Virus record (IMG/VR): IMGVR_UViG_3300029267_004162
Location: 62,001 to 126,000 of that record
Strand: one strand, 5' to 3'
DNA length: 64,000 nucleotides
The position numbers and the translations under genes are program-made. Below are positions 2,460 through 55,644 of this stretch, in pieces. Below the pieces are notes generated by a model. The model had not been told where the DNA came from and did not search any database. It worked only from the letters and a program-made list of their open reading frames with translations. Every line of letters starts with the position of its first letter. Position 1 is the stretch's first letter.

Positions 2460-3538
2460 CGAGGGATATGGGCCTTTCTGGTTCTAACAGCTACTACCGC
2501 TTGAATTCCCGTGTCATATCGGTATTGTTTCTTGGCTGCTGGTAGGGTGCCGGCGGCTCCACCTCCCCCACCATCGGCTCCAATGTCCCTCTCTAATCGA
2601 CCAAGCTCTTCACTGAGAAAACTCAGGTGATCATATTCGAGGGTGATGGTCTGACCACCATACGAAAATTGCATGTCACCTTCGAGTAGATACTGCGTTC
2701 TGAGAGTCCACCACGCAGCGGCTTCCACGAGAAAATGCTCGAACCATTGCCAGGGGAAATTGCTGAAAGTCCAAGTGCTAAAGGGGTGTACGCGATTTAC
2801 ATAATTGAGAGCCTTTACATAATTGTTGCATAGCTCTCCATCGCTATACGCTTGGATAATCCCAGCCTGTTTTTGGATTTTGTCTACGTAAACTCGCAGT
2901 TGTTTGATCAGACTGAACATAACGTGAGGTGCTGACCAGACGATATCGACTACCCGTTCAAAAGGCTTTCCGGTGAGTGGACGGTACTTCCAATAGATGA
3001 GGTATTCACCTCGCGTCAAACCAGGCAGTGAAAGCGTATAGCGGTACTGATCGGGTTCCTGTACTTCAATAACCTTGTTGCTGATTGCGTAGGTACCGAT
3101 TGAAGTAGGTGTTGGGAACTTGATGCCTTCCAAACTGCCGATGTATTCCACTTGAACAGATAAATCCACCACTGGAAAATCAGAGAACATTTCCCAGACG
3201 TCGGATTCGTTTTCCATCACGAAACCAACTTGCTTGTACTCTTCTGTTATGGGGTGGGCTACTACCACGAAAAAGCGAGAGATGGTATCCGTGTGGTCCC
3301 CACCACCGTATGTATAGGTCCACTCTATTTGGTGAGCCCCGAAAGTGGGATAACTGGGAACAGTCCAATCAAAAGCATACGCCTGAGGACCGGCCAAAGT
3401 GGCGGGGCCTTGCGTCAGGGTAGTGGTATTGGGATCCCGAATTACTACCTGCACCGCCCCATCTGGTACATGGGGAAGCGTTTCCCGAAAAGTAGTCTCC
3501 TTTTCGGGGAGTAGATTAGGTATGATTTGGTGAGCCAC
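2450..3538 (-). CDS. Putative neck / head-tail adaptor protein
   Basis: 362 aa, GTG start with GGAG SD; beta-rich N-terminus and helical C-terminus (LRVYVDK...YSDGEL...ALNYVN...QFSYGGQTITLEYD) resembling large-phage neck proteins. Confidence 0.5.
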   Translation of the reverse strand: MAHQIIPNLLPEKETTFRETLPHVPDGAVQVVIRDPNTTTLTQGPATLAGPQAYAFDWTVPSYPTFGAHQIEWTYTYGGGDHTDTISRFFVVVAHPITEEYKQVGFVMENESDVWEMFSDFPVVDLSVQVEYIGSLEGIKFPTPTSIGTYAISNKVIEVQEPDQYRYTLSLPGLTRGEYLIYWKYRPLTGKPFERVVDIVWSAPHVMFSLIKQLRVYVDKIQKQAGIIQAYSDGELCNNYVKALNYVNRVHPFSTWTFSNFPWQWFEHFLVEAAAWWTLRTQYLLEGDMQFSYGGQTITLEYDHLSFLSEELGRLERDIGADGGGGGAAGTLPAAKKQYRYDTGIQAVVAVRTRKAHIPRWG

Positions 3539-3553
3539 CTAAATCTCCTTGGG

Positions 3554-11419: not shown

Positions 11420-14400
11420 TTATATACGAGTCTTCTTGGAATTCTGCTGAATAAAGTCGTTAGTTTTACTTAGAGTGTGTGGGAAATTCTTGACCTTAAT
11501 GACCAATTTTCCGTTCTCAAACGTGGCTTCTCCATCCACACCTTCTCCTCCTCTTTGTACTGATCCAGCGGAGGTTTCTTTAGGAGGTATGTACATTGTT
11601 GGAGGTTGATTATACGTGGTGGCTTCTCCGAATGGCCTGTCAGGCTTAATACTCGGATTAGGTGCCAAGGGTGACCCCGACAATGCTCTAGCTCGTAATA
11701 GATAAGCCTGGCTTTCCTCTCTGGCTTTTTCCAGATTCTCCTTGACTTTGCGAACCCATTCACTGTCCTTATTTTCATCCCCTTCCAATTCACCGAGAAG
11801 CTTTCTTTTTCTCTCGGCTATGGCTTCACGTTCTTTGGCATTGAGAGTATTGACATTCTCATCGGCCTTCATGTAACGTTCTTCCGCAGTCTGGGATTTT
11901 TCGGCTTGTTCTTGTAAACCTTGCAATCGATCAAACTGCTCAGAACGGAATTGCTGCTCATTAGCTAACAGCGATTGAGCCTTGTCCTCGCCAAACACGG
12001 TAGCAAAATATTTCTTGACTATCTCCGGATCAGCCCCTTCAGCCAACATCCCTAGGGCTTCATCGGTCATCCTAACCAATTCCTGCTGTTGCTTGAGTTC
12101 CTTTTCGGCTATCGCTTTCTTTTCCTTAGACTCAGTTATGCGAGTTGTTAATTCCTTAGCAGTAGCCACCCCAGCGTTTTTGAGCAGTTCCAATCGCTTT
12201 CTTTCGAAATCTCTCCTGATTCCGAAAGTAGCCTCATAGATCAAACTCTCTTCGGCTTCACCCAAGGCACGTTCACGCGTATCCTCTATTCGACGCTGTT
12301 CTCTATCTGCCTTCTTTTGAACCCCGGCTGCTTGACGACGACCCATTATGAGTTTCTGACCTTTTTCATACGCGGCTTTACGACCTAGAAGAGCATGCAC
12401 CTCTCCGGTTTCAGCTATTAACAGGGAACCCTTGGAGGTATACTCATTGATAGTCTGAATGGATTGCAATTTTTTCTGAAGTTCTTCATCGGTCAGTTCG
12501 GCTTCTTTCTTTCCTTTCAACGCCCCCAGTGTTCGGAAAGCAGTTTGTAGCATCAGCATTTTGTCATCAAGTTCGGTTACTTCTCTAAGGCCTTCATCAG
12601 TCCTAACCGTTTTAGAAAGGCCCCTTTGTTGTAACAGAATTCCAAATTGATCGGCTGACATCCGAGCGGATTCCTGTACCAAATCTTGGATGTCTTGATT
12701 ATATTTTTCGATTTCTCGCTTGGCTGTAGTTTTTCTACTACCATACGAATCCCCCTGCCAATCCTCCATAGCCGATTTACCCAATCCTGTGATAGATCCC
12801 TTATCCAGATACAAGTGTTCAAATTGGGCGGCTAATTCCAAACGTCGAGCGGCTGCTAGGGTTTCCTCTGCCAAAGCTGAATTACCAGCTTCTGCGGCTG
12901 CACGAAGTGAAGTGGAAAGGTCCATCAATTTCTGCTGAGTAATGGTAGTCTGTTCATTGGTTGCTATTTGAGCGGTAATTTTCTTTTGCTCATTTTCCAG
13001 ATATTGACGAGTTAGATCGTCGTTGTACCCGGCCAAACGTTGAGATACTTCGGCTTCTCTTATACGAAGCCGGGCCAAATCACGTTGGGCTTTTTTGGAT
13101 TTCTCTACGGCTTTGAGTTCAATCAAATCCGCTTCGGTTCGCATATTTTCTAGTTTAGCAGCTCGTTTGGGATCAGCCATGACATCCATAAATGCATCAG
13201 CGGCTGAGCCTCCCATTTTATGCCCCAATGCACCCCCACCAAAACCACCGATAATTCCACCGACCACACCACCAATAGCTGTTCCAATGATGGGGACCAC
13301 CGATCCTACAGCAGCCCCGGCCATAGCTCCAGTAGCCATTCCACCCATTCCGCCAATAACCCCACCTGCTGCACCCCCTACACCACGAGCAGCTCCACCA
13401 TATTGAGCGGTTGCTAATTCGGTCAACCCTGCGGTAGCCTCTTTCTTCTGATCTTGTAGAGTTCGCAAGAGTGCCAGATTACCATCGGCCTTGGCTTGTT
13501 CGATATCCAGATTGAGTTGAGAAACTTCTCTCTGCTTGATGGTGATTTGTTCGGTATCACTCAAAGCATCGATCACACCTTTAGTGGCTACGCCCATTTC
13601 CACTAGTCCCAATGCAAGTCCAATTGGTCCTAGAGCTTTACCGGCCCCTTTCAAGCCCACGGCGGCTCCACCTTGTAGTGCTCCAGCACCAGCTTTAGTC
13701 GCTTGTAAAGCTTTACCAGGTATCTGACCAGCGCCACGAATACGCGAGCCCCAACGAGCAGCAAAACCACCAGTTTTTGTTGCGGCTCCTGTTGCAGCGG
13801 CTCCCCCACCTCGACCACCAAGTTTACCTGCTAGACCCGGTATCCCACCGGCTTTTTGCAACAAAGCAGTCCCGGCCACAGTGGCAATTAGAGCATACAG
13901 TATACCCGTATGGCTCTTTAGTTCCTCCCAAATGGATTCCAGGTACATACCTGGTTTGGCTCGTCGGAGAATATCCGCGACTTCCTCCATAGGCTCAATA
14001 ACTTCTTCACGAGCCTCATCTCCCAGCAAACCCATGTCCTTGATGTGTTTTGTGAAATCCTCCCGGCCGTACTCAGCTACTTTGGCCAGCTCTAAAGCGG
14101 TTTCTTCAGTACCACCAATCATGGCTTTGATAGCCCGGACATTACTTTGCTGGGCGAATCCAAAGATTTCATCCAGCCACGTTCTATTTTCACCCATCAA
14201 TTGTTGTTGGGTCTTTTGATTCTTGCGAACTAGATCAAAATTAGCCTGACTGATCGTGTACATGTCTGCACGACCTTCCTTCATCAGGCCAGTTTGCATA
14301 GCCAACTGTTTAGCGACTATCAATTGCTGATTATATTCTTCAGTACCAGCCTTTAACCCAGCGGTAAGTTTGGTAACCAACACAGATTCAATTTCTGTAC

Positions 14401-35708: not shown

Positions 35709-36407
35709 TTAGCCATTAACCGACTCAATCAAGATATGTAGGTCATTGAGATCGGTGAATTCATGATCTGGCCTGTGGGTGCCAATATCATAAATGCGGT
35801 TGGCTCTATTTACCCACCCACTACAAATACCCGCCCGAATTGCGCCCCCTACGTCACTATATAGTGAATCACCAACATGAATGACGTGTTCACGTCGCCA
35901 GCCAGTAAATTCAAGTGCATCCTCGAAAATGCGTGGATTGGGCTTGTAAGAACGAGAGTCCTCGGATGTTACCACCCCAGTTACTTGAATATCATGCAGT
36001 GCCAACGCCTGATCCACATCGGCTCGGTCAGTATTTGATACTATGCAAATAGGCGTGCAAAAATTCGCCAGAAAAGACCTCACTTCTGGCTGCAACGGTG
36101 GATTCTTACAAGACACGACTAAGGTTTTGACGTATGGAACTGGATCAAGATCAACGATACCTATCGCTGCCATCGTTTCCCGTAACGTTTGCACCTCGAT
36201 CTCGAATAGCGTCAGGAAGTTGCCATCGTTATGATAGTCTACGGCCCTCAAAAACTTTTCACCCCAGGCAACACTAAGCTTGGATGGTGACAATTCGATG
36301 CCCGTATCTCTAATGATGGTGGCACATACCATCTCAACAGCGGCGCGATCACCAGCCGTGAGCGTCCCATACATATCCATGAATACGCCATCAAATCTCG
36401 TCATCAT
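35709..36407 (-). CDS. HAD-superfamily (subfamily IA) hydrolase
   Basis: DMYGTL, VSN, YKPNPRIF, HVGDSLYSDVGGA motifs. Confidence 0.9.
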   Translation of the reverse strand: MMTRFDGVFMDMYGTLTAGDRAAVEMVCATIIRDTGIELSPSKLSVAWGEKFLRAVDYHNDGNFLTLFEIEVQTLRETMAAIGIVDLDPVPYVKTLVVSCKNPPLQPEVRSFLANFCTPICIVSNTDRADVDQALALHDIQVTGVVTSEDSRSYKPNPRIFEDALEFTGWRREHVIHVGDSLYSDVGGAIRAGICSGWVNRANRIYDIGTHRPDHEFTDLNDLHILIESVNG

Positions 36408-36437: not shown

Positions 36438-36812
36438 TTATGGTCTGGATTCATCAATTGCCTTTTGTTCTACCACTTGCGGACCTTTGTTGACTAGACG
36501 AATGCAACACTTTTTAAATTTCTTTCCGCTACCACAGGGACACGGGCGATTACGCAAACAATTCTTAACCTGTCTTATCTCGGTTACATCTTTATTCTGA
36601 CAAGCCTTGTCATATGCTTTCTGTAAACGAGGCTTTAAAGCCCCCTCGTCTTCTTCCCCTATAAACTCTCTCGTTACCCTTTTGGCTTCTGTTATATTTC
36701 CGGCGACTTCACTTTCAGAGGTGGTACCGCCCGGACTGGTTCTGTCAACGCTGGTTTCTTCATGCATTTTTGTTGTTCCTTTATTCGTTGTTTTTCTGCT
36801 TGTTTTAACCAA
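36438..36812 (-). CDS. SEC-C motif protein (start uncertain; overlaps TGT 3' end)
   Basis: RNRPCPCGSGKKFKKCC. Confidence 0.75.
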   Translation of the reverse strand: MVKTSRKTTNKGTTKMHEETSVDRTSPGGTTSESEVAGNITEAKRVTREFIGEEDEGALKPRLQKAYDKACQNKDVTEIRQVKNCLRNRPCPCGSGKKFKKCCIRLVNKGPQVVEQKAIDESRP

Positions 36813-38560
36813 ATTTTCTTGGCTTTTTGCTGCAGAGTCTTCTGTACCTTGGCATTCCCTTTTCCTCTACCGGTTCGTCCCCTCTTTTTCTCCACTTCTC
36901 TTTTAGAGAATTTGTGTTTAGTGGATAATTTACCAGTTGCAGTGGCCCGCAAATCCTGGATGTATGCCAAATAGCCCTTGTTATTTTTAACCTCTTTCCA
37001 CCAATTTTGGACTAACGGAGGAAACTGACCTAAAACTGCCGGGTCATCCATATTCATATAGAGAGGCATCAATTCTAAATTACTTCCCTCCCTAACCCCC
37101 GTCATCACTGGGTCTCCATCTTCATCCATTAAGTCCCGATCTTCACTAAACACGATATCAGGTTTTAAACTAGACTTCTTTCGAGTTTCAGCGTAATACA
37201 AACTACGAAATTCCTGAAAACCCGCATCCACCCCATATTCGATGGTGTGTTCTACATAAGCCACTAATTTGGCTGAACTAGTCCCGAAAGTCTTTTTGAC
37301 CCATTGATAATAATCTTCATAATCACTTTTTTTGGCCGTCTCATGAAGTAAGTTAGTGAAATTATTTAATGCCCAGATGTTATGAATAGCTAAATACGGA
37401 CCAATTTTAGTATTCTCGCTCCAGAAGGGGTCCATAAATCCAAGAGAGGAACAAACAGGACAAGCACATGTGGTTGGCAACCGACCCATGTGAGCAAAAT
37501 CATTCAGCGGAACTCCGTGGTTGTTTTTCTTGGTTTTTCCGTCTAGATGAAATTCAGTTCCAATCCGATCCGTTGAAATATATCCAGAGGGGTGTTGGAT
37601 GAGTATTTTACGGTGACCTACCCCTAGAAACTGACTGCTGGAATCGCAAGTAACCCGAATTTCCATTCGTTTAGCGAACCACGCCATAGCAGGCATAATC
37701 TTGATTCCCGATACTCCCAGGACATGGACCCATTTGGCCTCTCTTTCTGTTGCTACCAAAAGGGCTCCTCTTAGGGCGGAAGCAAAATCTTGAGAATCCC
37801 CAGAACCTGCACTAGCCCACCCAAAGAATTGTGGGCGATCAACCACATCAATCCATCGCCTTTGATCATCTGGGGTACAACTATGCACGATGTTAAAGAC
37901 CTTTAGATCAGGTCTCATGTTAGCAGTGTAACAATCAGCGAATTGCGATTGTAAATGAGAGAGGGTAGAAAAAATATCTTTTTGTCCAAAATCAGTTCCC
38001 TCTCGGGGAGGCGCGTCCAAAATCAAAGCATAGTCAGAGGTTTGGTTTTGCCATTCAATAACTGCCTTCGGATCAAGATAATCAACTGTTCTAACTCGAA
38101 GTTGATACCCTCCGGAATCCGTCATATGCACCAGGCCTGATGTCTTAGCCCAGTTGGTTCTCTGGTTTTTTCTAATTCCATATGCAGCAGAACTAAGAAT
38201 GATCCCGACTTGCCTGTTAATAGATCCTTCTTCACAGAAAGGGTCTAATTCATGAACTACGTCAAAATCCCGTGGGTCAAACGGAGCCATGGAAGGGTAA
38301 GAAACAGAACTCCGACCAAAATTGTTTAAGAACACGGTGCGATCGGGAAGATCGTATATTTGAATTTGGTTGTTTAGTTTATGATAACCCACTCCGAACC
38401 GAGAAACATGATCTATTTGTTTCTTAAACCGTACTCCAATAGACGGGTGAAAGGAAACTTCCGCTCCAGCCATGATCCAAGTAAGTCCACCCGGATCGGC
38501 GTCAGTGCCAAAAGTCCCTAGGATTTCGTCTCGTCGAGAAGTCAAAATTACTGCCTGCAT
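36692..38560 (-). CDS. TGT/DpdA-like 7-deazaguanine transglycosylase
   Basis: HMTDSGGYQ, ILDAPP, WVHVLGVSG, VTCDSSS and zinc site CACPVC...HN; N- and C-terminal extensions. Confidence 0.85.
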   Translation of the reverse strand: MQAVILTSRRDEILGTFGTDADPGGLTWIMAGAEVSFHPSIGVRFKKQIDHVSRFGVGYHKLNNQIQIYDLPDRTVFLNNFGRSSVSYPSMAPFDPRDFDVVHELDPFCEEGSINRQVGIILSSAAYGIRKNQRTNWAKTSGLVHMTDSGGYQLRVRTVDYLDPKAVIEWQNQTSDYALILDAPPREGTDFGQKDIFSTLSHLQSQFADCYTANMRPDLKVFNIVHSCTPDDQRRWIDVVDRPQFFGWASAGSGDSQDFASALRGALLVATEREAKWVHVLGVSGIKIMPAMAWFAKRMEIRVTCDSSSQFLGVGHRKILIQHPSGYISTDRIGTEFHLDGKTKKNNHGVPLNDFAHMGRLPTTCACPVCSSLGFMDPFWSENTKIGPYLAIHNIWALNNFTNLLHETAKKSDYEDYYQWVKKTFGTSSAKLVAYVEHTIEYGVDAGFQEFRSLYYAETRKKSSLKPDIVFSEDRDLMDEDGDPVMTGVREGSNLELMPLYMNMDDPAVLGQFPPLVQNWWKEVKNNKGYLAYIQDLRATATGKLSTKHKFSKREVEKKRGRTGRGKGNAKVQKTLQQKAKKIWLKQAEKQRIKEQQKCMKKPALTEPVRAVPPLKVKSPEI

Positions 38561-38571
38561 TGGTTCTTGCT

Positions 38572-39189
38572 TCAGCGACCAGAGTTAACCAGATCAATTC
38601 TAGATGATCCGGCCAGAGCACCGGTCTCCACAAGCGTAAATTCCCGAGCGGCCCTCGGTATACAAAGATTGTGTGCCGCATTACCATCGCGATCCAAGAC
38701 CGCGTGGCAATTGGGGCACGTCCATTTCCTCATACATAACGATAAAGAATCAACTTTAAACCCACAGTGATGACAAATCTTACTGGAGGGGTAAAACCGA
38801 TCCCGAACTACGAGAGATGATCCAGAGGCTTCGCATTTGTAAATTAATTGCCTGCGGAATTCACTCCAAGAGGCATCACTGATATGGCGGGCTAGAGCGT
38901 GGTTTTTGATCATGCCGGCCACGTTTAGGTCCTCGATGCAAATCTCTTGGAACATGTTGGACAACTGAGTAATCAGTTTGTGCAGGAAGTCTTGGCGGTG
39001 ATTGGTGATTCGCCAGTGATGACGAGCCAGTGTCGCTGCTGATTTCCTTCTGTTGTTAGAACCTTTTTGTTTACGGCTATGACGGCGAGACAACTTACGA
39101 AGTTTAGTCAAACCCTTGCCTAAAGCTTTGATGGGTTTCTTCTTGATGAACCTCCGAAAAGATGGGGTCGGAAAGTCTCTCGTTTACAT
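38572..39189 (-). mobile_element. tnpB: Truncated TnpB (IS200/IS605/IS607 OrfB) remnant
   Basis: SRKQKGSNNRRK, ICIEDLNVAGM, FYPSSKICHHCG, WTCPNCHAVLDRDGNAA; RuvC-I and N-terminal domains missing; in-frame ATG-TAA at 39189-39184. Confidence 0.85.
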
Positions 39190-39222: not shown

Positions 39223-40485
39223 TTACGCAACCACGCCTTGGCACATTACTGATTTGATTGGATTCCAGTCAGCCCCAACATCCGTCAGGTAGTACACTCC
39301 CGCTCCTTCAATCTTTGTTGTACATTCATACAAATTTTTAACGGATTCAGGGATGTCCTGACCAAAAGCTGTTACAAGGCAAATATCTTCGGAGGCTTCG
39401 GATGCCAAGAAATGGCCGTTTTTTGTTATCCCGGCGGTATTGGAAATTGCCCATTTATTTGTATCTTGGGGTGGAGTGCTCACTAAATATTGTAAGGCTG
39501 GGATACCATTTTTGATCAAAACCGAAGCAAAATACTTCGAGCGAACCGGGAATTCCTTCATGCCCTCCCATAACCCAAAGAGCAATTCAGTATAACTAAA
39601 AGCGCAAGCCGCCACCTGGGCTTCAGTAGGATGTGGCATACGGGTAGTGTATTCTAAGAAATACATTTCCCCATCCGGAGTAACCATACAGTTGATATCG
39701 AAAAACCCTACGTGTCCTCTTATTTTGACCTCATGTGCTCGCATGAGATCGCCAATCGGAAAGGACAGTTGATCCAATTCCGTCCAGGTCATAAATTGAC
39801 CACAAGATCCTGATTCCCCAGTCATCTCAGTGGACCTGATCTGTTTAGGGTACCGTCGCTTGTATTCTTGAATCATGGTAAAAGGTTGTAGGAATTTGCC
39901 CTCTGCCCCCATGAACCCACCGAATCCAACTTCTTCACCTTCTATAAACTCTTGGTATACGGCACCCTGAAAATTAGTGGTCTTCAAAAACAAATCGCGT
40001 TTGTACAGCACCATTGTTCGGATAGAATTGCCCGGAAATCGTTGCTTAACCACATACTGATTTTCATCGAACTTAACCACTACTTTATCACCAGGAAACA
40101 TTTGTGCTTTATCTGGATCAGTAGTCGTCCGAGGAATTTTTATCCAGGGAGCCAACTTTTTGATAAACATAGCAGCAAACCCACGATCTAGTTCTAGTCT
40201 AGCACCAAGATCAACTGCTCGAATTTGCTGAGCTTCCCCCAGATTTGAAAAATGGTCTACGTAAAAAATCAAATCCGAAGGTCGGGAAATCTCTTTTACG
40301 CCCTCCCCCAACTGCCGCCAAGTCGAATACCACCGGATAGACATTCCAGGAGGTAAAACTTTTTCTTCGTCTGGGGGTTCGGGGGCCACTACATGAAAAA
40401 ACACCTCCACCGTGTCTTTAATCAAAGCAATAGCCAAAGCAAAGGGACACCAGTCCCCCACGAAATGAACTCTCCGAGTAGTCAT
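39223..40485 (-). CDS. PurD-like ATP-grasp amine ligase
   Basis: LELDRGFA, VVVKFD, QEFIEGEEVG, QEYKR, TGESG, GFFDINCM, YFLEYTTRMPHPT: divergent GAR-synthetase pattern. Confidence 0.8.
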   Translation of the reverse strand: MTTRRVHFVGDWCPFALAIALIKDTVEVFFHVVAPEPPDEEKVLPPGMSIRWYSTWRQLGEGVKEISRPSDLIFYVDHFSNLGEAQQIRAVDLGARLELDRGFAAMFIKKLAPWIKIPRTTTDPDKAQMFPGDKVVVKFDENQYVVKQRFPGNSIRTMVLYKRDLFLKTTNFQGAVYQEFIEGEEVGFGGFMGAEGKFLQPFTMIQEYKRRYPKQIRSTEMTGESGSCGQFMTWTELDQLSFPIGDLMRAHEVKIRGHVGFFDINCMVTPDGEMYFLEYTTRMPHPTEAQVAACAFSYTELLFGLWEGMKEFPVRSKYFASVLIKNGIPALQYLVSTPPQDTNKWAISNTAGITKNGHFLASEASEDICLVTAFGQDIPESVKNLYECTTKIEGAGVYYLTDVGADWNPIKSVMCQGVVA

Positions 40486-41216
40486 ACCAATTCCTTTGGT
40501 TTAACATCATACTCAGTTGAATCCTGGCCTTCAGCAGTCATAAAAGCCCAGTGCCTACCTCGACAAGCAAAACAACCACCACAATGATCTGATTTGCTAT
40601 TTTGAAAACAAGACACCGTCGTTTCCAATGGAGCCCCCAATGCTCTACCCAAACGAACAACTGCGGCTTTGTCTAGCCCAGCTAACGCATCGATCATTCC
40701 AAAATGGACTGCTGTTCCAGGGTGATTTTCGTGATAAGGTGTAAAATCGTTGTACAAAGAGCCGATTTCTCCACGGAATTCACTAGAATCCATAGTATCA
40801 AACACACCCCCAAGAAATTCATTCGTAAAATCTTTAGTGGCCGGGTCATTCATTCCAGAACCCCCAGTATCAGCATCCATCTCGCCAGTGTATACTTTTT
40901 CCACACCTATCTTTTCAGCCATCGCCAAAGCAAGGGAGTATTGAAATAACTTGAACCCAGGAATGTAATTACTTCCTGGAATTTGCAACTTGTCCAAAAC
41001 ATCCCGCATATCCACACGAGTCAATTTAAGACCAAGAAGACATGCAATTCTATTCTGCGATTCAACGACCTTTTCTTGTCCCCATAAATTCAGCGATAAC
41101 AATAGGGGGTAGGCCCCGGCTTTCTGGAGCATAGCAGCTACCACAGTGGAATCCAAACCGCCGCTAAAAAGTACCAGAGATTTGTAAACTTGCGTATGTG
41201 TATGCGTGTGGGTCAA
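40482..41216 (-). CDS. Divergent QueC paralogue (PP-loop ATPase)
   Basis: SGGLDS and SCF...HCGGCFAC retained; canonical VPxRN replaced by IPGFK and YPDCR absent. Confidence 0.8.
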   Translation of the reverse strand: MTHTHTHTQVYKSLVLFSGGLDSTVVAAMLQKAGAYPLLLSLNLWGQEKVVESQNRIACLLGLKLTRVDMRDVLDKLQIPGSNYIPGFKLFQYSLALAMAEKIGVEKVYTGEMDADTGGSGMNDPATKDFTNEFLGGVFDTMDSSEFRGEIGSLYNDFTPYHENHPGTAVHFGMIDALAGLDKAAVVRLGRALGAPLETTVSCFQNSKSDHCGGCFACRGRHWAFMTAEGQDSTEYDVKPKELV

Positions 41217-41932
41217 ACGAGAGCCTCCGGAGTATCTTTACTCTTCTTAACCATAGCGATGAAATGCAAACAGCATTCTATTTGATTACGGGGAAACCCC
41301 AAGTGTTCAACACAATACCGAATTACTTGATCGGAATCTAAAGATTTAGTGTGCGTCCCAGCGCGACCCATGATGGTAAGTTTACCTCCACGAGTACCAG
41401 CCACCAACTGCTCCATGGATTCCTTCACAAGTCTCCTGGTGAAAATAAACCGGGAAGTGATGTGTTCTTGGGTTAGACAATAGGCCAGTTGTTTTCCATA
41501 CACTTCAGCATCAAAAGAATCGGCGTGAAATTTGTACAGGGTTTGGGGTGTAGTCGCAACACCCTGACGAATAACAGCACCATTGCATAGGGAAGCCCTC
41601 CCCGGAATAGAATAATCTTGTTCGACGCCCCAAAGATCAAAAGCAAGGAACATAAAAGAGGGGTCGATAATCCAGCGGTGGTCCACCAGCAAAATTGAGT
41701 GGGTCAATTGCCCCTTCACTTCCACAACTACTAGTTGGCCTTGTCCCAACAGTTGTTGTGCCTGTCGGGCTAAGTGAAAGCAGTTTCCTGATTTGGCCCC
41801 GTAGGCCAAATCTTTTTGAGGATAATCCGGGGTGCCTCTTCCCTTGGCAAGAGCCGTGATCTTAGAGATGGTCTCAAATAACCAGGTTTGAGGATTCAGT
41901 TTTTCTACGGCCTGTTGCAAAAAAGAAGTCAT
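41213..41932 (-). CDS. Arylamine N-acetyltransferase / transglutaminase-like Cys-His-Asp protein
   Basis: SGNCFHL...THSILLVD...WIIDPSF triad spacing like the NAT family. Confidence 0.6.
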   Translation of the reverse strand: MTSFLQQAVEKLNPQTWLFETISKITALAKGRGTPDYPQKDLAYGAKSGNCFHLARQAQQLLGQGQLVVVEVKGQLTHSILLVDHRWIIDPSFMFLAFDLWGVEQDYSIPGRASLCNGAVIRQGVATTPQTLYKFHADSFDAEVYGKQLAYCLTQEHITSRFIFTRRLVKESMEQLVAGTRGGKLTIMGRAGTHTKSLDSDQVIRYCVEHLGFPRNQIECCLHFIAMVKKSKDTPEALV

Positions 41933-41936
41933 GGTA

Positions 41937-42398
41937 TCACCTCAAATGAGGTTCGAGGGTGGGGAAAGTACCAAATCTATCTGATGCCCATTGTGCCCAC
42001 TCCTCACTGTGTCTCTGTGCGAATGGTTGGATGGCTATGCCCCCACGAGAATTAAAACACCCAATTACTTCAACATACTTGGGGGTCAACAAACTCATCA
42101 AATCTTCGACTATGACGTTGACAACTGCTTCGTGGAAAGCTCCATGATTTCTAAAACTGCCCAGGTAAAGCTTCAGAGCTTTGCTCTCGACTAAACGCTC
42201 CTGAGGAACATAATTGATGTAGATCGTACCCCAATCAGGTTGACTGGTGACGGGACAAATACTGGAGAATTCTGAACAGATCAAGCGAATCCAAAATACC
42301 GACTCCCGTGATGGGCTGGGTACATGTTCTAGAAGTTCAGGATTGTACTGTTGAGTCTGGGAACCAAATCCGGAATTACCTGAGCCTAAATGATTCAT
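41937..42398 (-). CDS. queF: NADPH-dependent preQ0 reductase (type I QueF)
   Basis: EFSSICPVTSQPD, QueF motif ESKALKLY, FHE, FNSRGGI. Confidence 0.93.
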   Translation of the reverse strand: MNHLGSGNSGFGSQTQQYNPELLEHVPSPSRESVFWIRLICSEFSSICPVTSQPDWGTIYINYVPQERLVESKALKLYLGSFRNHGAFHEAVVNVIVEDLMSLLTPKYVEVIGCFNSRGGIAIQPFAQRHSEEWAQWASDRFGTFPTLEPHLR

Positions 42399-42750: not shown

Positions 42751-43539
42751 CTAACGATTAGGACACAAAATCAGACCACTGCGAATCTCCAGTTCTTCCA
42801 GCGTAACAGTGTAGTTCTGAAAGTTGGCCTTGCGAGGTGTATCCTGGGGCAAAAGATAAGCTGTCGGAGTTTCCCCTCTGATCATCACGATTTTCCAAAA
42901 AGCGGAGGGAACACAGTGGGGTTCATCTGCTCCAGGTAATTGAGGCATGCTATCGTCTTCGAATAGTGGGCCGGTGAGAATCCAGGTTTCCCCATGTTCC
43001 CATGTCAGTTCTCGCACGTAGATTTCCAATCCTAGCCAAGTTCCCTGATTGAGACCAGGATACTGAGGTGCGATGTTGCTCAGATAGTTTACTTGAGAAG
43101 CATCTTTGGACCCCCGGAAAGAAGCCAATGGAGCTAGGTGACCCCGATCAAAATCACTGGCTCCCTTGTAGTCGGCTGGTTCCAAAGTTTCAGCCGGATC
43201 CAATAGAGGATCACTTCTCCACACCCGAGCTAAATCCAGTGTTCCTCTTGTTTTACTGGGGGTTAAGTGATAAGCCACCCAGTCTGCTAGCTTGGTTTCG
43301 ATGTTAGCACTAAGGGCGTAAGATTCACGCACAACAATGACATTGGTTTCGGGGGTGCCGATTGGACAACCAAAAAGGAAATGTTCACATCGAATCTGAC
43401 CGGTGGGGAAGGGGATGGGAGCAACAGCCATTAAAGGCTTGGGGGTAGAAACGGTGAGCGTCAAGAATGCCCGGATGAGGATGATGAGACAAATCGAGCA
43501 CACAATCCACGTACAAGTCCGACGGGGTTTAGTCGACAT
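42751..43539 (-). CDS. DNA/RNA non-specific endonuclease (NucA/EndA family) with N-terminal membrane anchor
   Basis: ADWVAY, FDRGHLAP, NYLSNIAPQ..LNQGTW..LE, VPSAFWK; start moved to MSTKPRR. Confidence 0.9.
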   Translation of the reverse strand: MSTKPRRTCTWIVCSICLIILIRAFLTLTVSTPKPLMAVAPIPFPTGQIRCEHFLFGCPIGTPETNVIVVRESYALSANIETKLADWVAYHLTPSKTRGTLDLARVWRSDPLLDPAETLEPADYKGASDFDRGHLAPLASFRGSKDASQVNYLSNIAPQYPGLNQGTWLGLEIYVRELTWEHGETWILTGPLFEDDSMPQLPGADEPHCVPSAFWKIVMIRGETPTAYLLPQDTPRKANFQNYTVTLEELEIRSGLILCPNR

Positions 43540-44068
43540 GAAGTTTCTCCCAACCGGTTTCTGGATAGTACACGCGATTGCCATCAAAAATGTAAATTAG
43601 CATATAGTCGTCCCCCAAGTTGCTATTGGTGAAACATCTGTGTCCGCCTTCATAAATCAACAGGTAATTCCCACCGCCAATCCACATCCAGCTATCAGTC
43701 ACGAAATTCCACAGATACAGTTCTTTGCTAAACCACGTGTAATAGCTGTATTTCTTGCATTTTTTATAACCCGGCGGTATTACATATACTGAATCATCCC
43801 TGGTCACTTCTAAAACTGGAGTCGTTTCTATCTTTTGACACTTCCTCATTTTCAGACACTGTTTACAGGTAACGCGCTGCCAATGGGGGCTGGTACGACT
43901 CTCACTTGCCCAAAACTCCAACCCACATACCGCAAAATCATACGAGCCATAATTAACTACCCTCCCGCCTTGATATCCTCGGTCTCTACGTTTCCGCTTA
44001 TGTATAATCTTTCGCTTCTCTAAAGGCTGCGGGCTACTTACCGTCATCTCATTTCCTAACCGGGCCAT
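43529..44068 (-). CDS. Hypothetical protein
   Basis: ORF track; VTCKQC. Confidence 0.5.
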   Translation of the reverse strand: MARLGNEMTVSSPQPLEKRKIIHKRKRRDRGYQGGRVVNYGSYDFAVCGLEFWASESRTSPHWQRVTCKQCLKMRKCQKIETTPVLEVTRDDSVYVIPPGYKKCKKYSYYTWFSKELYLWNFVTDSWMWIGGGNYLLIYEGGHRCFTNSNLGDDYMLIYIFDGNRVYYPETGWEKLHVD

Positions 44069-44717
44069 AGACGGTAGGATCGGTTACCTCGGCTAACCGA
44101 AATGCCTCTCGTCGTTCCACACAGGTTCCACATTTACCGCAATGAGTGACTTGTCCTTTGTAGCATGACCATGTCTCCCCGAAGGGCACGTGTAATTCAT
44201 GACCGAGACGGCATATCCTGGTTTTATCATACCGAAGAAAGGGAGTCCAAATAGGTACCGGATAATAATGACACACATCAGCGATCTGAGACAAGGCTAT
44301 CACAAAGGCTGGTCTACAGTCTGGGTAGATGGAGTGATCCCCAGCGTGAGCAGCATAAGCCACGGCGTCATATTTCTCATTGATGCAACACCCAATAGCG
44401 ATCGATAACATGATCATATTACGATTGGGAACTACCGTGGTCTGCATATTCTTGTCAGCATAATGCCCCTCCGGCACCACCGTTGCTGAATCCATCAAAG
44501 CGTTATCGCCCAAGAGTTGACCCACGGAACGTAAGTCTAAGATATGATGGGGACACTTATACTCGATTGCCAAAGCGGCTGCGGCTTCGATCTCCCGTCG
44601 TCCGTGTTTCTGACCGTAATTGAAGGTCAAACACTGACAAGTATGGCCTTGTGCCAATAAACTGGCCAGAAGTACAGTAGAATCCATCCCACCGGATAGG
44701 GATACAATCACTTTCAC
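44049..44717 (-). CDS. queC: 7-cyano-7-deazaguanine (preQ0) synthase
   Basis: SGGMDS, YGQKH, VVPNRN, YPDCR, TWSCY...HCGKCGTC; GTG start at 44717 with GGAGG SD. Confidence 0.95.
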   Translation of the reverse strand: MKVIVSLSGGMDSTVLLASLLAQGHTCQCLTFNYGQKHGRREIEAAAALAIEYKCPHHILDLRSVGQLLGDNALMDSATVVPEGHYADKNMQTTVVPNRNMIMLSIAIGCCINEKYDAVAYAAHAGDHSIYPDCRPAFVIALSQIADVCHYYPVPIWTPFLRYDKTRICRLGHELHVPFGETWSCYKGQVTHCGKCGTCVERREAFRLAEVTDPTVYGPVRK

Positions 44718-45658
44718 TGGGGTGCCTCCGCCAACATCGGAATTTCCGAGGACACGGCTCGAAGAATATCGCGTTTGTATTCCCCTGCCACATCGGGAGT
44801 CCCCAGGGACAAAGATTTGCACTGCTTTTCATAAGCGGTTTGCATCAGAAACAGGATCATCAACGTTATGGGATCAAACTTCTTAAATCCAGGTAGGGAC
44901 CATACTTCTACCAGACGTAGTTGGTCCGTCTCCTGGAAATATAAGATCAACCCCAGTGGTTTGCCCTCGAATTCGAGTACCAGAGCCTCTGCGTGAATTC
45001 CGGCCAGAATCAAATAGTCCCAACGTGATTTGTTGGTCGTCGCCCATTTGGTAAGAGGGGTCTCTTTTAGAGGCGAAGTAAGATGTTGCAATTCCCCAAA
45101 CCAAAAATCTGGGGTCTTTGGCTGACTTACCACCTTGGGGCTAAACTTTCGCCAGGTCGTTCGAGTATAACGACAATCAGTACCTTTCAAGTGGCTCTCA
45201 AAATCAGAAGCGGCAAGAGGTAAAATCAATTCTGTCTGAGTCGGAATCCCCTCCCCATACAGCAGCTTGATCAGAGATTCAAAATCGGGGCCACTTAAAG
45301 CCAGGAGGTTTCTAGTCAAGCCGAGGTTGTTCAAAGGAAAGACTAGCAGTGGAGTGTAGCCATCATCCTTCATCTCTGATACACGAACAATGCCACTCTG
45401 CTCCCGTTTAGCAATTAGATGAAGGATACCGGGTGGAACATCCAAATTAATAGGGTTTAGGCCCTGAATTCCCCTCATTAAAACATCAGACCATTCTTGG
45501 TGGTGTTCAACCAAAAAACACCGGCCATCACGTTCTACTCGTGTACCTAGCTGGGGACGAGGGGGTTTATCCCGTTTAACAACCAATCGTTTAGATCGTG
45601 TTTTCTTCTTAACGGCTGGTTTTGATGGTAATGACGACGACGTCATGTTATCTCTCAA
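44714..45658 (-). CDS. GNAT/Fem-like acyltransferase-domain protein
   Basis: C-terminal LVLEFEGKPLGLILY...LMILFLMQTAYEKQCKSLSLG...EYKR; GTGA-coupled to queC. Confidence 0.55.
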   Translation of the reverse strand: MRDNMTSSSLPSKPAVKKKTRSKRLVVKRDKPPRPQLGTRVERDGRCFLVEHHQEWSDVLMRGIQGLNPINLDVPPGILHLIAKREQSGIVRVSEMKDDGYTPLLVFPLNNLGLTRNLLALSGPDFESLIKLLYGEGIPTQTELILPLAASDFESHLKGTDCRYTRTTWRKFSPKVVSQPKTPDFWFGELQHLTSPLKETPLTKWATTNKSRWDYLILAGIHAEALVLEFEGKPLGLILYFQETDQLRLVEVWSLPGFKKFDPITLMILFLMQTAYEKQCKSLSLGTPDVAGEYKRDILRAVSSEIPMLAEAPQ

Positions 45659-53208: not shown

Positions 53209-54012
53209 TCACCTCGTACTGGTTGTTCCACTTTTCAGAATACGAAATGGAGGGGTTGTTATGCCCTTTGGATAATACCGCGAGAGAATAGAATAGAATT
53301 GATCTTCATCAGCGTCCCCCTCAATTCTTTCCCCGCCCTTAGAGGTAGTCATTGTGAATGTACCCACATCGGGGTGTTGTATCTCGATTATGCCATCGAA
53401 GAAAACGATGGTTGTGTTTTCTATGGCCATGTCGGCGATATGAATGGCCAGGGGTACCATATCATCAGGGAAGAGTCCAATGATACGGTAGATTCCAAGA
53501 GAGAGCGTTTCAATCCCTGAGCCTAGTTGCTTTTCTCCCTGCGGTCCAACCACCTGAGAGTGAGAAGCAAATGCACGGGTAAACCGGCGGGAAGGAAAAG
53601 TGGTGCCATCCTCTCGAATAGGCTCCACCAGTTTAAAGCTCTCTTCCAACTCGGCATCCGTAATATCTGGCTCGTAAAACCGGGCTCTGAGTTCTTCACT
53701 ATCAGTGGAGTAAAGATCATACTGAATCGTCACTTCAGGAATTTCTTGATCAGGTTCAAGTGGAACTCGATCAAGTGTACAACGATAAATCTGCACCCCC
53801 TTATCGTCGGTGGTTCTTCCAACTGATACACGATAGGTCGGCACCAAGCAATACTCAATTATCTTCTTGAGTAAATGAGCGGGGTTATCCTCCACCACCC
53901 TTGCTTCTGAACGGCTCAGAATCATTCCAGAATCCGTCAACAACCATGGAACTAAAATCATTGCATTTCCTACCCTATAGAGAGATAAACCCGACAGATT
54001 TATACCATTCAA
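53209..54012 (-). CDS. Hypothetical protein (start uncertain)
   Basis: 267-aa ORF. Confidence 0.6.
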   Translation of the reverse strand: MNGINLSGLSLYRVGNAMILVPWLLTDSGMILSRSEARVVEDNPAHLLKKIIEYCLVPTYRVSVGRTTDDKGVQIYRCTLDRVPLEPDQEIPEVTIQYDLYSTDSEELRARFYEPDITDAELEESFKLVEPIREDGTTFPSRRFTRAFASHSQVVGPQGEKQLGSGIETLSLGIYRIIGLFPDDMVPLAIHIADMAIENTTIVFFDGIIEIQHPDVGTFTMTTSKGGERIEGDADEDQFYSILSRYYPKGITTPPFRILKSGTTSTR

Positions 54013-54976
54013 CAGTAGAGATAACTCCTGCTGAGAGGGGCGTCTTTGGTTGATACCCCAATTGAAGTTTAGCTTTACTAATGTCGGCTATGTAATAAGT
54101 TACTTCACCACGAAGAGGATCAGTGAACGTAACGACTGGTTCTTTACCAATGGAGAGACTAAGTAAATTCACCAGATCCCACAAGGTACTACCCCGCCCA
54201 TAGGCAAGGTTGAACGTAGCACCAACTACAGTGCCATGTCTTTTATGATTGGCCAGAAGTGCTCGCATTGCTCTGGTCAACCCATCAATGGCGTCATCGA
54301 TGTAAGTAAAGTCCAAAGTCTTGTTTTTTCCAAAGACTTCGATTGGTTCTCCCTTACTAATTCTCTTAGCAAAGAGGGGGATAACTCGTTCCATTCGTTC
54401 TAAGTCATTGTCATATCGACCATAGACGTTACTGAAACGAACGATAACAAAAGGCAGATCGTAACTCTTATGACAAGCATGGAGCATAGCCTCTCCAGCT
54501 AGTTTGGTAGCCGAGTAGGGACTTTCCTGAGCTTGAATATGAGCGTCGTCTTCCCGAACAGACCTCACTTCAAATTCTGGCTTATTTCCATACACCTCCC
54601 GGGAACTAGCAAAGACAACCGGCGTGTTATGACGACGACACGCCTCGGCCACCCGATAAATAGACATGAAATTAGACACTGCTCTATCAGGATATTCTAC
54701 TAATTCGTGAACTTTGGCATACGCGGCTAAATGAATCACCACGTCAGCCCATTCCATTAGGGGGCTGAGATCAAAAGAGGACTCAGCAATATCGCCTCTG
54801 TAAAAATCTTTTACGACAGCGGATTGGGATAAATCCCACCAAGGAAAACTGTTTTTATCGATACCAATAGCCTGGTATTTCTCCGGACCTTGTTGTTCCA
54901 ACCACCGAATAAGGTTACTACCAATTTGCCCGCTAGCCCCGGTTATCACTACTTTAGTTGGTTCCACTACATTCAC
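53975..54976 (-). CDS. NAD-dependent nucleotide-sugar epimerase/dehydratase (extended SDR)
   Basis: ITGASGQIG, SSREVYG, PYSATK (YxxxK), RFSNVYG, DFTYIDD; start approximate. Confidence 0.9.
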   Translation of the reverse strand: MNVVEPTKVVITGASGQIGSNLIRWLEQQGPEKYQAIGIDKNSFPWWDLSQSAVVKDFYRGDIAESSFDLSPLMEWADVVIHLAAYAKVHELVEYPDRAVSNFMSIYRVAEACRRHNTPVVFASSREVYGNKPEFEVRSVREDDAHIQAQESPYSATKLAGEAMLHACHKSYDLPFVIVRFSNVYGRYDNDLERMERVIPLFAKRISKGEPIEVFGKNKTLDFTYIDDAIDGLTRAMRALLANHKRHGTVVGATFNLAYGRGSTLWDLVNLLSLSIGKEPVVTFTDPLRGEVTYYIADISKAKLQLGYQPKTPLSAGVISTVEWYKSVGFISL

Positions 54977-54978
54977 CC

Positions 54979-55644
54979 TTAAATAGCGCCCCATTTTTGT
55001 AAGCGAACAAACGCATATAAAGCAATGCAACCGGCATCAGCTTCGTGATCCGTTTGGGCTTCAGGAAAGTAATCTCTACTAGTCATTTCATATTGATTTA
55101 GGATCACTGTCTTCCACATAGCGGCTGTGAAGACATCGACAGGTCTTTTAGAAGTGGCTACTATCGCACCAATTAACAGATTAATTGGTTCAATGTCCCC
55201 CGTTGCTTTACCCCGCTTAGAATATCGTTCGATAGCCAATAACTGCGGATTTTGAGCAGTGTGTTTAACACACTTTTTTAACTCTTCCTGGACAACCCGA
55301 AAACCATCATGACAAATGCTTTTCTTAAATTTTTTAGTGGTCTTTAATAAGCCAGAAGCCAAACTCCGGTATTGGTCACTTTCGAAATCCGTGACCTCAA
55401 CCATGTGCCAACCAAAATGTTTAGTACCAGGATCCAATCCCAGAATAATCGTAGGCACCAAAAATTCAACACCTTCCCATAAACCGCGAGAAGGTTGTTC
55501 AGAAGGGGCTGGAAGGTTTAACTCTGATTGCGACTTCGTTTTCTTCTTTACCTTCCCCATGTTACCTTTCTTTTTGGCGAGTTTTTTTGCAGTAAGTTTC
55601 TTTCTTGGTTTGTCTAATTTGTCCTTCGCACCCTGTGGTGGCAC
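54979..55644 (-). CDS. RuvC-like Holliday junction resolvase
   Basis: ILGLDPGTKHFG, LAIE, DHEADA; Lys-rich N-terminal extension. Confidence 0.8.
   Translation of the reverse strand: MPPQGAKDKLDKPRKKLTAKKLAKKKGNMGKVKKKTKSQSELNLPAPSEQPSRGLWEGVEFLVPTIILGLDPGTKHFGWHMVEVTDFESDQYRSLASGLLKTTKKFKKSICHDGFRVVQEELKKCVKHTAQNPQLLAIERYSKRGKATGDIEPINLLIGAIVATSKRPVDVFTAAMWKTVILNQYEMTSRDYFPEAQTDHEADAGCIALYAFVRLQKWGAI

Follow-up and report, generated by a model that had tools for sequence, protein, structure and literature searches.

A jumbo phage known only as a metagenomic contig was found to carry a diverged paralogue of the purine-synthesis enzyme PurD inside its predicted operon for replacing guanine in DNA with 7-deazaguanine bases. 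We tentatively read this protein as an ATP-grasp amide ligase that tailors a 7-deazaguanine, most likely by acylating the aminomethyl nitrogen of preQ1, which would be a DNA modification not yet described.

A PurD fold without the PurD signatures

The ORF lies at exactly 39223–40485 on the minus strand of the analysed window (the 64,000-nucleotide stretch at positions 62,001 to 126,000 of IMGVR_UViG_3300029267_004162) and encodes a 420-aa protein, with an ATG start and an AAGGAA ribosome-binding site 8 nt upstream. An earlier note, made from the sequence alone, had described it as a PurD-like ligase with GAR-synthetase-type ATP-grasp motifs, lacking the GxGGRE loop, with RFGDPE changed to RMPHPT, overlapping queC2 and without any other pur gene in the window; this observation was confirmed. 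Thus, a phmmer search of the PDB found only PurD (2yw2, E 3.2e-5, residues 94–404), a profile built from seven family sequences found only PurD chains (E 5e-11 to 2e-4), and the NCBIfam purD model TIGR00877 gave E 1.1e-9. Moreover, the AlphaFold2 model (pLDDT 89.5, pTM 0.90) showed the four-domain PurD fold, its 15 best PDB matches being all PurD (E 5e-20 to 5e-17, TM 0.63–0.69), ahead of biotin carboxylase, PurT and PurK. The ORF is not regarded as an artefact, because divergent homologues exist with invariant catalytic residues.

Nevertheless, the protein is not a canonical PurD. It scored 37.7 bits against the curated equivalog cut-off of 288 bits (some 250 bits below it), only model positions 98–422 being matched, and there was no Pfam GARS_N, GARS_A or GARS_C match at E ≤ 0.01. 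The N-terminus reads HFVGDWCPFALA where PurD has GxGGREH (the loop itself reading VGDWCPFA), the Arg and Glu of which (Arg13/Glu14 of human GARS) contact the acyl phosphate and the PRA ribose; no family member has this loop, whereas it is present in 4 of 5 canonical controls in the alignment, the fifth reading GSGARE. Residues 282–287 read RMPHPT where PurD has RxGDPE (R[LF]GDPE, PS00184), so that the Asp proposed as the base for the PRA amine (PMC2978367) is His (Phe or Tyr in relatives) and the Glu that holds the glycine amine is Thr, which is invariant in the family.

By contrast, the ATP-grasp catalytic residues are retained. E98, R101, K138, E185, E207, K209, D263, N265, E278, T280 and R282 are conserved in the family, and the ATP- and Mg-binding residues together with the Arg that stabilises the acyl phosphate map onto Aquifex PurD E100, K103, K143, E192, K214, E283 and R287 (residue roles from PMC8880213). 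In particular, K138, E185, K209, E278 and R282 align to Aquifex K143, E192, K214, E283 and R287 and are conserved in 7 of 7 family members, except K138, which is Gln in one. Because of this exception, and because the Mg-binding Asn of ExN is Thr, activity is only likely on present evidence.

Placement in a distinct paralogue lineage

In a quick-search tree of 87 rows, canonical PurD sequences were separated with 99% SH-aLRT support from a lineage that we informally call T-type, which is characterised by ExTxRxGxPT, DxN on the preceding strand, QE[YH]K, a TGE loop, the R of LExDR and the absence of GxGGRE. All these features are present in the phage protein, except that Gly284 is Pro, and it falls inside a phage clade (clade A) with 98% support. 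Nesting within canonical PurD, which had been set beforehand as a condition against the recruitment reading, was therefore not observed. A widespread cellular branch (clade B), found from CPR bacteria to Thaumarchaeota, is the sister of clade A, and in 5 of 5 cellular genomes tested the T-type paralogue coexists with a canonical PurD. No conserved neighbours and no link to Que genes were found for this cellular clade across 160 loci, so that it gives no functional hint. These results show that the gene belongs to an old, large paralogue lineage and is not a fresh recruitment of PurD by this phage, contrary to what the earlier note had implied.

The protein and its closest relatives form a rare family within clade A, with 7 clusters among 1.84 billion representatives. 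No cultured or catalogued phage with the family was found by tblastn of the protein against 50,697 GenBank phage records, by megablast of the region, or by an IMG/VR scan with the family profile, and a fold search of BFVD gave no full-length match (best TM 0.47). A distant fused version occurs, however, in cultured Pseudomonas putida jumbo phages; Pseudomonas phage vB_PpuM-Lauda carries a DpdA-like gene, two QueC-like genes and a 694-aa protein with a T-type PurD-like domain.

Linkage to 7-deazaguanine genes

The ligase gene is the last of four minus-strand genes separated by a 4-nt gap and two 4-nt overlaps. The first, at 41937–42398, encodes a unimodular NADPH-dependent QueF, the preQ0 reductase that makes preQ1 (TIGR03139, 139.1 bits against a cut-off of 86.9; Pfam QueF, E 1.5e-32), with the QueF motif ESKALKLY and the catalytic Cys context ICPVT. 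The second, at 41213–41932, is a 239-aa ORFan translationally coupled between QueF and QueC2, without a Pfam, PHROG or NCBIfam match and without a homologue in a word search of 5.8 billion proteins; a weak structural lead to the arylamine N-acetyltransferase fold (TM 0.64) rests on a low-confidence model made without an alignment of homologues. The third, at 40482–41216, encodes QueC2, a diverged QueC-family PP-loop ATPase of 244 aa (Pfam QueC, E 1.6e-21; weak QatC match), which keeps SGGxDS and the CxxCxxC zinc motif but lacks the YxQxHxxE, VPxRN and YPDC signature of canonical QueC (compare PMC13329287). Its stop overlaps the start of the ligase by 4 nt (ATGA). Prediction of a complex between the ligase and QueC2 returned no answer (score 0.00), which is not evidence either way, and promoter and terminator scans of the cluster gave no more sites than in shuffled sequence.

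Upstream lie a DNA/RNA non-specific endonuclease inside the cluster at 42751–43587 (minus strand; Pfam Endonuclease_NS, E 9.2e-40) and a canonical QueC, the preQ0 synthase, at 44049–44822 (minus strand; TIGR00364, 183 bits against a cut-off of 150), in which all canonical motifs are present. Downstream, at 36692–38560 (minus strand), a putative 622-aa TGT-superfamily, DpdA-like transglycosylase is encoded, which matched by blastp a protein carrying Pfam TGT in L016, the locus of a relative (E 8.7e-28), and in a profile search ArcTGT 1iq8 (E 9.7e-6), with DSGGFQ and CxCxxC...H motifs invariant in the alignment, but gave no match to Pfam TGT itself at E ≤ 0.01. Between this gene and the ligase is inserted the C-terminal remnant of a TnpB/OrfB_IS605 gene (38572–39111, minus strand; Pfam Cas12f1-like_TNB and OrfB_IS605), which matches only positions 214–360 of the 403-position phrog_506 profile. 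A HAD-family hydrolase or nucleotidase at 35709–36407 (minus strand; Pfam Hydrolase, E 4.7e-16; NCBIfam matches to YjjG-type nucleotidases, all below cut-off) lies downstream, its membership of the cluster being uncertain. The remaining genes for preQ0 synthesis, FolE (116 bits), QueD (96.9 bits) and a radical-SAM QueE-like gene (47 bits), lie elsewhere in the genome.

All 10 clade-A relatives with usable flanking sequence sit beside QueC, Gat-QueC, ArcS2, QueE, FolE or TGT genes, although the ligases themselves are only 22–37% identical and gene order differs; the co-occurring contigs are not fully independent samples.

These data leave little room for a functional though odd GAR synthetase that boosts purine synthesis during infection as an auxiliary metabolic gene. 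The overall PurD fold, the PurD family as the only significant sequence match, and a SAICAR-synthase-like gene on one relative's contig speak for it, but the replaced PRA and glycine residues, the low equivalog score, the placement outside the canonical clade, the coexistence of T-type paralogues with true PurD and the linkage to Que genes make it very unlikely. Indeed, Pfam scans of 40 window ORFs showed no other pur gene, and PF00551 (PurN/DpdN), PF01259 (PurC) and PF00586 (PurM/PurL) gave no match in the whole 262,650-bp phage genome, a search that did not separately cover PurF, PurE, PurK, PurB and PurH.

It is likewise improbable that the protein serves another pathway, such as thymidine hypermodification, or is an inactive relic whose position among the Que genes is incidental. 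Related contigs carry a UDG-fused family-A polymerase of the kind reported for phages with T-modified genomes (PMC13697223), this genome has ThyX-like and dCMP-deaminase-like genes, and a transposon remnant lies next to the gene. However, the gene is translationally coupled to QueC2, the linkage to Que genes is conserved across very divergent loci, and the invariant catalytic residues argue against a relic.

Proposed function and alternative substrates

We propose that the protein is an ATP-grasp carboxylate–amine ligase of a PurD-paralogue lineage that has lost the phosphoribosylamine and glycine contacts of PurD, and that it acts as a tailoring enzyme of a 7-deazaguanine DNA-modification pathway. 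In this view, host or phage GTP would be converted by FolE, QueD and QueE to CDG, by QueC to preQ0 and by QueF to preQ1; the ligase would phosphorylate a small carboxylate (an amino acid or short acid) with ATP to form an acyl phosphate and transfer the acyl group to the aminomethyl nitrogen of preQ1, giving an N-acyl-preQ1; and the DpdA-like transglycosylase would put the base into DNA in place of guanine, before or after acylation. The predicted fold, the retained catalytic residues, the lost PurD substrate residues, the placement outside canonical PurD, the operon structure and the conserved linkage to Que genes are established by the present analysis, whereas the enzymatic activity (including any lack of GAR synthetase activity), the identity of both substrates, action on the free base, the activity of the DpdA-like protein on DNA and the occurrence of a 7-deazaguanine in virion DNA are inferred. 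The interpretation of the earlier note, a parallel recruitment from the purine pathway that ligates a carboxylate to the preQ1 aminomethyl group, is thus partly supported: a PurD-derived ATP-grasp ligase working outside purine synthesis, in a 7-deazaguanine operon containing a genuine preQ1-forming QueF, is supported, but preQ1 as the acceptor is inferred only.

In favour of preQ1, QueF is genuine, and in PurD, PurT and PurK the larger substrate is the amine nucleophile and the small carboxylate is the one activated. The same nitrogen is methylated or formylated in known phages (PMC10516641), although the formylation by DpdN, which the earlier note took as established, is described there (Cui et al. 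2023) as that of a 'proposed' preQ1/dPreQ1 formylase. The acidic nature of the protein (pI 5.5, net charge −8) also fits a small-molecule substrate better than DNA. On the other hand, three of the six closest relatives lie next to Gat-QueC or ArcS2, which make amide or amidine derivatives, with no QueF in the ±10 kb seen, whereas the family-specific residues H251, E288 and L400 are invariant across all seven members. This argues for a substrate common to all these phages, such as CDG, and the family's common substrate may therefore not be preQ1. Moreover, QueC2 and the 239-aa ORFan could equally be the enzymes that act on preQ1.

A serious rival, though less likely in our view, is that the ligase activates the carboxylate of CDG (7-carboxy-7-deazaguanine) as an acyl phosphate and joins it to an amine (amino acid, polyamine or amino sugar), giving an N-substituted 7-amido-7-deazaguanine, with preQ1 not being its substrate. 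CDG is the only carboxylate in the pathway and is common to every context, whichever tail enzyme is present (QueF here, Gat-QueC in the relatives' loci L002, L011, L017 and L019, and ArcS2 in L009), and amide formation on a base carboxylate has precedents in Cap9 and QatC, which ligate CDG to a protein N-terminal amine (PMC13329287), and in CmoY, which ligates 5-carboxymethylcytosine to glycine in DNA (PMC12783734). Against it, the activated acid in PurD, PurT and PurK is small and the bulky partner is the amine; a diverged QueC paralogue, the enzyme type already known to adenylate CDG, lies next to the ligase in most loci and would be redundant; and in this phage a complete route past CDG to preQ1 is encoded in the same operon.

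It is also conceivable, but more doubtful, that the ligase works further out on a larger side chain, acylating an amino sugar or extending an aminoacyl group already attached to the deazaguanine, as MshC does after the PIG-L-type deacetylase MshB in mycothiol synthesis, or that it builds the amine that QueC2 attaches. The relatives' loci repeatedly carry glycosyltransferase-like genes, PIG-L deacetylases, FemAB/GNAT-like acyltransferases, a methyltransferase-like gene, an arginase-like gene and a lysine-aminomutase-like radical-SAM gene; two loci, L016 and probably L018, carry two PurD-like genes; and the natural amine substrate of PurD is itself a glycosylamine. However, none of these accessory families was detected in this phage genome by BLAST or HMM searches, which gave only weak QueC-like matches, and here the cluster is small and centred on QueC, QueF, QueC2 and the transglycosylase.

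More broadly, it is slightly more likely than not that PurD-derived ATP-grasp ligases define a previously unrecognised class of tailoring enzymes for 7-deazaguanine DNA, making amide-linked (aminoacyl- or acyl-preQ1, or N-substituted amido) hypermodified guanine replacements in many uncultured large phages. Eight 7-deazaguanine derivatives are known in phage DNA, and the tailoring enzymes described so far are a decarboxylase, a methyltransferase, a formyltransferase and amidotransferases; no paper in the library searched links a PurD-like or ATP-grasp ligase to 7-deazaguanine DNA modification. An ATP-dependent amide ligase in these clusters predicts new, bulkier guanine replacements, which would affect restriction, CRISPR and glycosylase defences and would also hamper sequencing of these genomes. 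It would be a second case, after PurN to DpdN, of a purine-pathway fold reused on deazapurines, and it gives a functional handle on a very large PurD-paralogue lineage of unknown role.

Comparison with known systems

With PurD (glycinamide ribonucleotide synthetase, EC 6.3.4.13), the phage protein shares the predicted four-domain N-B-A-C ATP-grasp fold, homologous motifs throughout (LExxR/K, VVK, EEFxEGxE, QxxK, ExxxR and the C-terminal DxG) and presumed acyl-phosphate chemistry joining a carboxylate to an amine. It differs, besides the loop, score, clade and gene context described above, in that RxGDPE reads RxxxPT, SQDHK reads QEYK (Asp to Glu) and the Mg ligands are rearranged (DxN on the preceding strand and ExT instead of ExN). 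The 'extra' PurD-like proteins of haloarchaea (rrnAC0307 and Hlac_1553), for which, with these defects, Brown et al. 2011 (PMC3261824) reached the same verdict that they are not PurD, and the cellular T-type clade found here resemble it in having no GARS_N match, a divergent N-terminal loop and a non-conserved GDPE Asp, and in coexisting with a true PurD, their function being unknown; the cellular clade is, however, the sister of the phage clade and not the same group, in a tree that did not include the haloarchaeal proteins themselves.

DpdN and DpdM, the proposed preQ1/dPreQ1 formyltransferase and the methyltransferase of phages (Cui et al. 2023), are, as proposed here for the ligase, tailoring enzymes encoded next to QueF in phage 7-deazaguanine clusters that decorate the aminomethyl nitrogen of preQ1, and DpdN is also a paralogue of a purine-pathway enzyme (PurN), but their folds and chemistry are unrelated, the present enzyme being predicted to be ATP-dependent and to form an amide from a free acid. 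PurT, the formate-dependent GAR transformylase, is an ATP-grasp enzyme that acylates an amine using a free small acid and ATP, and shows that this fold can do with ATP what a PurN-type enzyme does with formyl-folate; it is among the structural matches but ranks below all PurD structures, with no sequence-level match found. Finally, CmoY and Cap9/QatC provide precedents, in the phage–host conflict setting, for ATP-dependent amide-bond formation on a modified nucleobase, that is, for amide-linked base hypermodification and for CDG amides, but these are AMP-forming PP-loop enzymes of the asparagine-synthetase or QueC type, not ADP-forming ATP-grasp enzymes, and are relatives of the neighbouring QueC2 rather than of the ligase.

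Genome setting and kinship of the predicted ligase with PurD

The window covers bases 62001-126000 of an IMG/VR virus record. The virus genome of 262,650 bp, which is rated complete by CheckV, belongs to a jumbo phage, and almost every long ORF in the window lies on the minus strand, whereas no GenBank phage record resembles the region at the DNA level. The ORF at 39223-40485 (-) encodes a protein of 420 aa, for which neither Pfam nor PHROGs gave any match. Its kinship with PurD is nevertheless secure. Thus, a phmmer search of the PDB found only PurD (2yw2, E 3.2e-5), a profile built from the seven members of its own family found seven PurD chains and nothing else, and the NCBIfam purD model was matched with an E value of 1.1e-9, although with only 37.7 bits against a cut-off of 288. 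Moreover, an AlphaFold2 model built on 95 aligned relatives was confident (pLDDT 89.5, pTM 0.90), and its 15 best PDB matches are all PurD, across all four domains, followed by biotin carboxylases, PurT, and PurK; a comparison with AlphaFold DB clusters gave the same answer. The observation made in the earlier note is confirmed by these results: both of the motif changes that it described are present, that is, the absence of the GxGGRE loop and RMPHPT in place of RxGDPE, and the start of the ORF overlaps the stop of the upstream QueC paralogue (ATGA).

To compare individual residues, the protein was mapped onto Aquifex PurD using the HMMER alignment, with residue roles taken from PMC8880213 and PMC2978367. 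The residues for ATP, Mg, and the acyl phosphate are kept (E100 to E98, K103 to R101, K143 to K138, E192 to E185, K214 to K209, E283 to E278, and R287 to R282). In contrast, the substrate contacts are changed: glycine-binding D212 becomes E207 and E292 becomes T287, the Asp proposed to act on the PRA amine becomes His (Phe or Tyr in relatives), and Arg13/Glu14 of the N-terminal loop are gone. A site-by-site table over 86 sequences showed that these switches are fixed in a whole lineage, which also carries a new DxN pair on the preceding strand, ExT for ExN, and a Glu in the TGxxG loop. The seven-member family of the query adds invariant H251 and E288, and replaces the Arg of the C-terminal YRxDIG motif with Leu, although that Arg is kept in every other group including canonical PurD.

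Placement in a lineage of PurD paralogues

An exhaustive profile search of 1.84 billion representatives gave 407 hits at E ≤ 0.001, of which seven (P0001-P0007, the query family) scored E ≤ 1e-64, followed by a gap to 1e-24. Of the best 150 hits, one is a canonical PurD, and nearly all the rest carry E[FYW]TxRxGxPT and lack GxGGRE (hereafter designated T-type). In a maximum-likelihood tree of 87 sequences, canonical PurD and the T-type proteins are split with 99% support; the T-type proteins divide into clade A and clade B, each at 98%, and the query family is monophyletic (100%) inside clade A.

Clade B is cellular and very widespread, with at least 600 hits each in JGI metagenomes (sampled as loci L021-L100) and in GTDB species genomes (L101-L180), from DPANN archaea and CPR bacteria to Omnitrophota, Acidobacteriota, Gemmatimonadota, Thaumarchaeota, and others. 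These proteins (EFTxRFGYPT), to which no function has been assigned, are about 40% identical to one of the profile hits, P0029, and no conserved neighbours were found around their genes, which always sit beside unrelated ones. In 5 of 5 genomes tested, the T-type gene sits alongside a separate canonical PurD, and T-type proteins are therefore paralogues with another job.

Gene context in the phage

Reading down the minus strand, the cluster consists of a canonical QueC with all signature motifs, a 179-aa unknown, an Endonuclease_NS nuclease, a 113-aa unknown, QueF, a 239-aa ORFan, a diverged QueC paralogue (QueC2), the predicted ligase, a TnpB C-terminal remnant, a 622-aa protein, and a HAD hydrolase. 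QueF scored 139 bits against a cut-off of 86.9 and contains the NADPH "QueF motif". QueF, the ORFan, QueC2, and the ligase are separated by a 4-nt gap and two 4-nt overlaps. FolE, QueD, and a QueE-like radical-SAM gene lie elsewhere in the genome, whereas searches of the genome for PurN/DpdN, PurC, and PurM/PurL domains found none.

QueC2 (40482-41216, minus strand) keeps the ATP PP-loop and the zinc motif, but lacks the YxQxHxxE, VPxRN, and YPDC residues shown to be essential for preQ0 synthesis (PMC13329287). It has a weak QatC match and may ligate CDG to something other than ammonia; a second, diverged QueC occurs in most related loci as well. The ORFan (41213-41932, minus strand), translationally coupled between QueF and QueC2, has no detectable homologue anywhere. 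A low-confidence ESM model of it resembles arylamine N-acetyltransferases (TM 0.64), which would make it another candidate for acting on the preQ1 amine. The nuclease in the middle of the Que gene cluster (42751-43587, minus strand; Endonuclease_NS, E 9e-40), a non-specific DNA/RNA endonuclease, may degrade unmodified host DNA while the phage's own DNA is protected.

The 622-aa protein (36692-38560, minus strand) is a TGT-superfamily, DpdA-like member, with DSGGFQ and CxCxxC...H motifs, a match at E 8.7e-28 to a protein carrying Pfam TGT, and a profile match to archaeosine TGT. It has homologues annotated as hypothetical proteins in cultured jumbo phages of Pseudomonas putida, Xanthomonas, Erwinia, Vibrio, Achromobacter, and Burkholderia (24-25% identity, E to 1e-25; locus L020, 9226-10596). 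Wedged between this gene and the ligase is a 179-aa ORF (38572-39111, minus strand) that is only the C-terminal half (RuvC and zinc-finger part) of a TnpB/IS605 OrfB and looks like a decayed transposon insertion inside the modification operon. About 13 kb upstream of the cluster, among unknown ORFs, lies an NAD-dependent sugar epimerase/dehydratase (53975-55030, minus strand; Pfam Epimerase, E 2.7e-48).

Gene context of the clade-A relatives

Every clade-A member for which usable flanking sequence was available lies beside 7-deazaguanine genes. In the loci of the relatives (L numbers; the ligases are designated by P numbers), P0002 in L002 neighbours Gat-QueC, QueC, and radical SAM genes; P0003 in L009, an ArcS2-type DUF5591 gene and two QueC; P0005 in L011, Gat-QueC; P0006 in L013, a QueE-like gene; P0008 and P0010 in L016, TGT; P0009 in L017, radical SAM, QueC, and Gat-QueC genes; P0017 in L018, FolE and two QueC; P0025 in L019, FolE and Gat-QueC; and P0038 in L186, a QueC fragment at the contig edge. 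With the window itself, this makes 10 of 10, whereas three short contigs (2-5 kb) show nothing either way. The ligases are 22-37% identical and gene orders differ, so that the linkage has survived long divergence, although the contigs are not fully independent samples. Homologues of the DpdA-like protein recur in L016, L018, and L019.

Many of these loci add glycosyltransferase-like, PIG-L, FemAB/GNAT-like, and methyltransferase-like genes, none of which was detected in the present phage. Some carry two PurD-like ligases in one cluster (L016, 6998-8311 and 10001-11275; and probably L018, 12344-13522), which hints at stepwise building of a side chain. The L011 contig, which has Gat-QueC and the ligase, also contains a SAICAR-synthase-like (PurC-like) gene (2837-3550), which may be another purine-pathway amide ligase put to a new use. 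Furthermore, related contigs encode family-A DNA polymerases with a Pfam UDG domain (L002, 1-2896; L009, 5256-7961; L013, 1203-4007; L017, 7194-10004), a type recently tied to phages with thymidine-hypermodified DNA. The present phage has a homologous polymerase (215357-218284 of its own genome) as well as ThyX-like and dCMP-deaminase-like genes, and these phages may modify more than one base.

Inferred function and the candidate substrates

The retained catalytic core, the altered substrate residues, and the operon position point to an active amide ligase that tailors a 7-deazaguanine; while the residue changes, the placement outside canonical PurD, and the linkage to Que genes are direct results of the sequence comparisons, the enzymatic activity and both substrates are inferred from them. 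For this phage, we tentatively favour acylation of the preQ1 aminomethyl nitrogen by an ATP-activated small acid, because a genuine QueF is co-transcribed with the ligase, because in PurD, PurT, and PurK the bulky partner is the amine, and because the same nitrogen is the known site of methyl and formyl decoration (PMC10516641). The acidic nature of the protein (pI 5.5) suggests action on the free base before transglycosylation. The main rival is activation of the CDG carboxylate, which is favoured by the finding that close relatives sit with Gat-QueC or ArcS2 rather than a visible QueF, while keeping the same family-specific residues, and which has precedents in CDG- and carboxymethylcytosine-amide ligases (PMC13329287, PMC12783734). 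A complex prediction of the ligase with QueC2 gave no answer, and the choice between the two substrates remains a preference on present evidence.

Collectively, the interpretation given in the earlier note is supported in part. Its general idea, a PurD-type ligase repurposed for deazaguanine chemistry, is well supported, and the specific substrate that it proposed, the preQ1 aminomethyl group, is plausible but unproven, whereas its evolutionary account of a recruitment from the purine pathway needs amending.

Relation to known systems

None of the papers found with the search terms used describes a PurD-like or ATP-grasp enzyme in 7-deazaguanine DNA modification, and no cultured phage was found to carry the query family. 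A distant relative does exist, however, in a cultured phage, Pseudomonas phage vB_PpuM-Lauda, which has a DpdA-like gene and two QueC-like genes. Three genes downstream of the two QueC-like genes, it encodes a 694-aa "hypothetical protein" (Lauda_00191; 11771-13855 of locus L188), whose C-terminal 345 residues (residues 334-678) match the T-type profile by hhalign (probability 99%, E 6.6e-18). Although a literature search found no DNA-modification data for these phages, this is a cultured system in which the modification could be measured. As to its origin, the ligase belongs to an old paralogue lineage and is not a direct recruitment of PurD. Brown et al. 2011 (PMC3261824) likewise concluded, for two haloarchaeal "extra" PurD-like proteins with the same defects, that such proteins are paralogues with another job.
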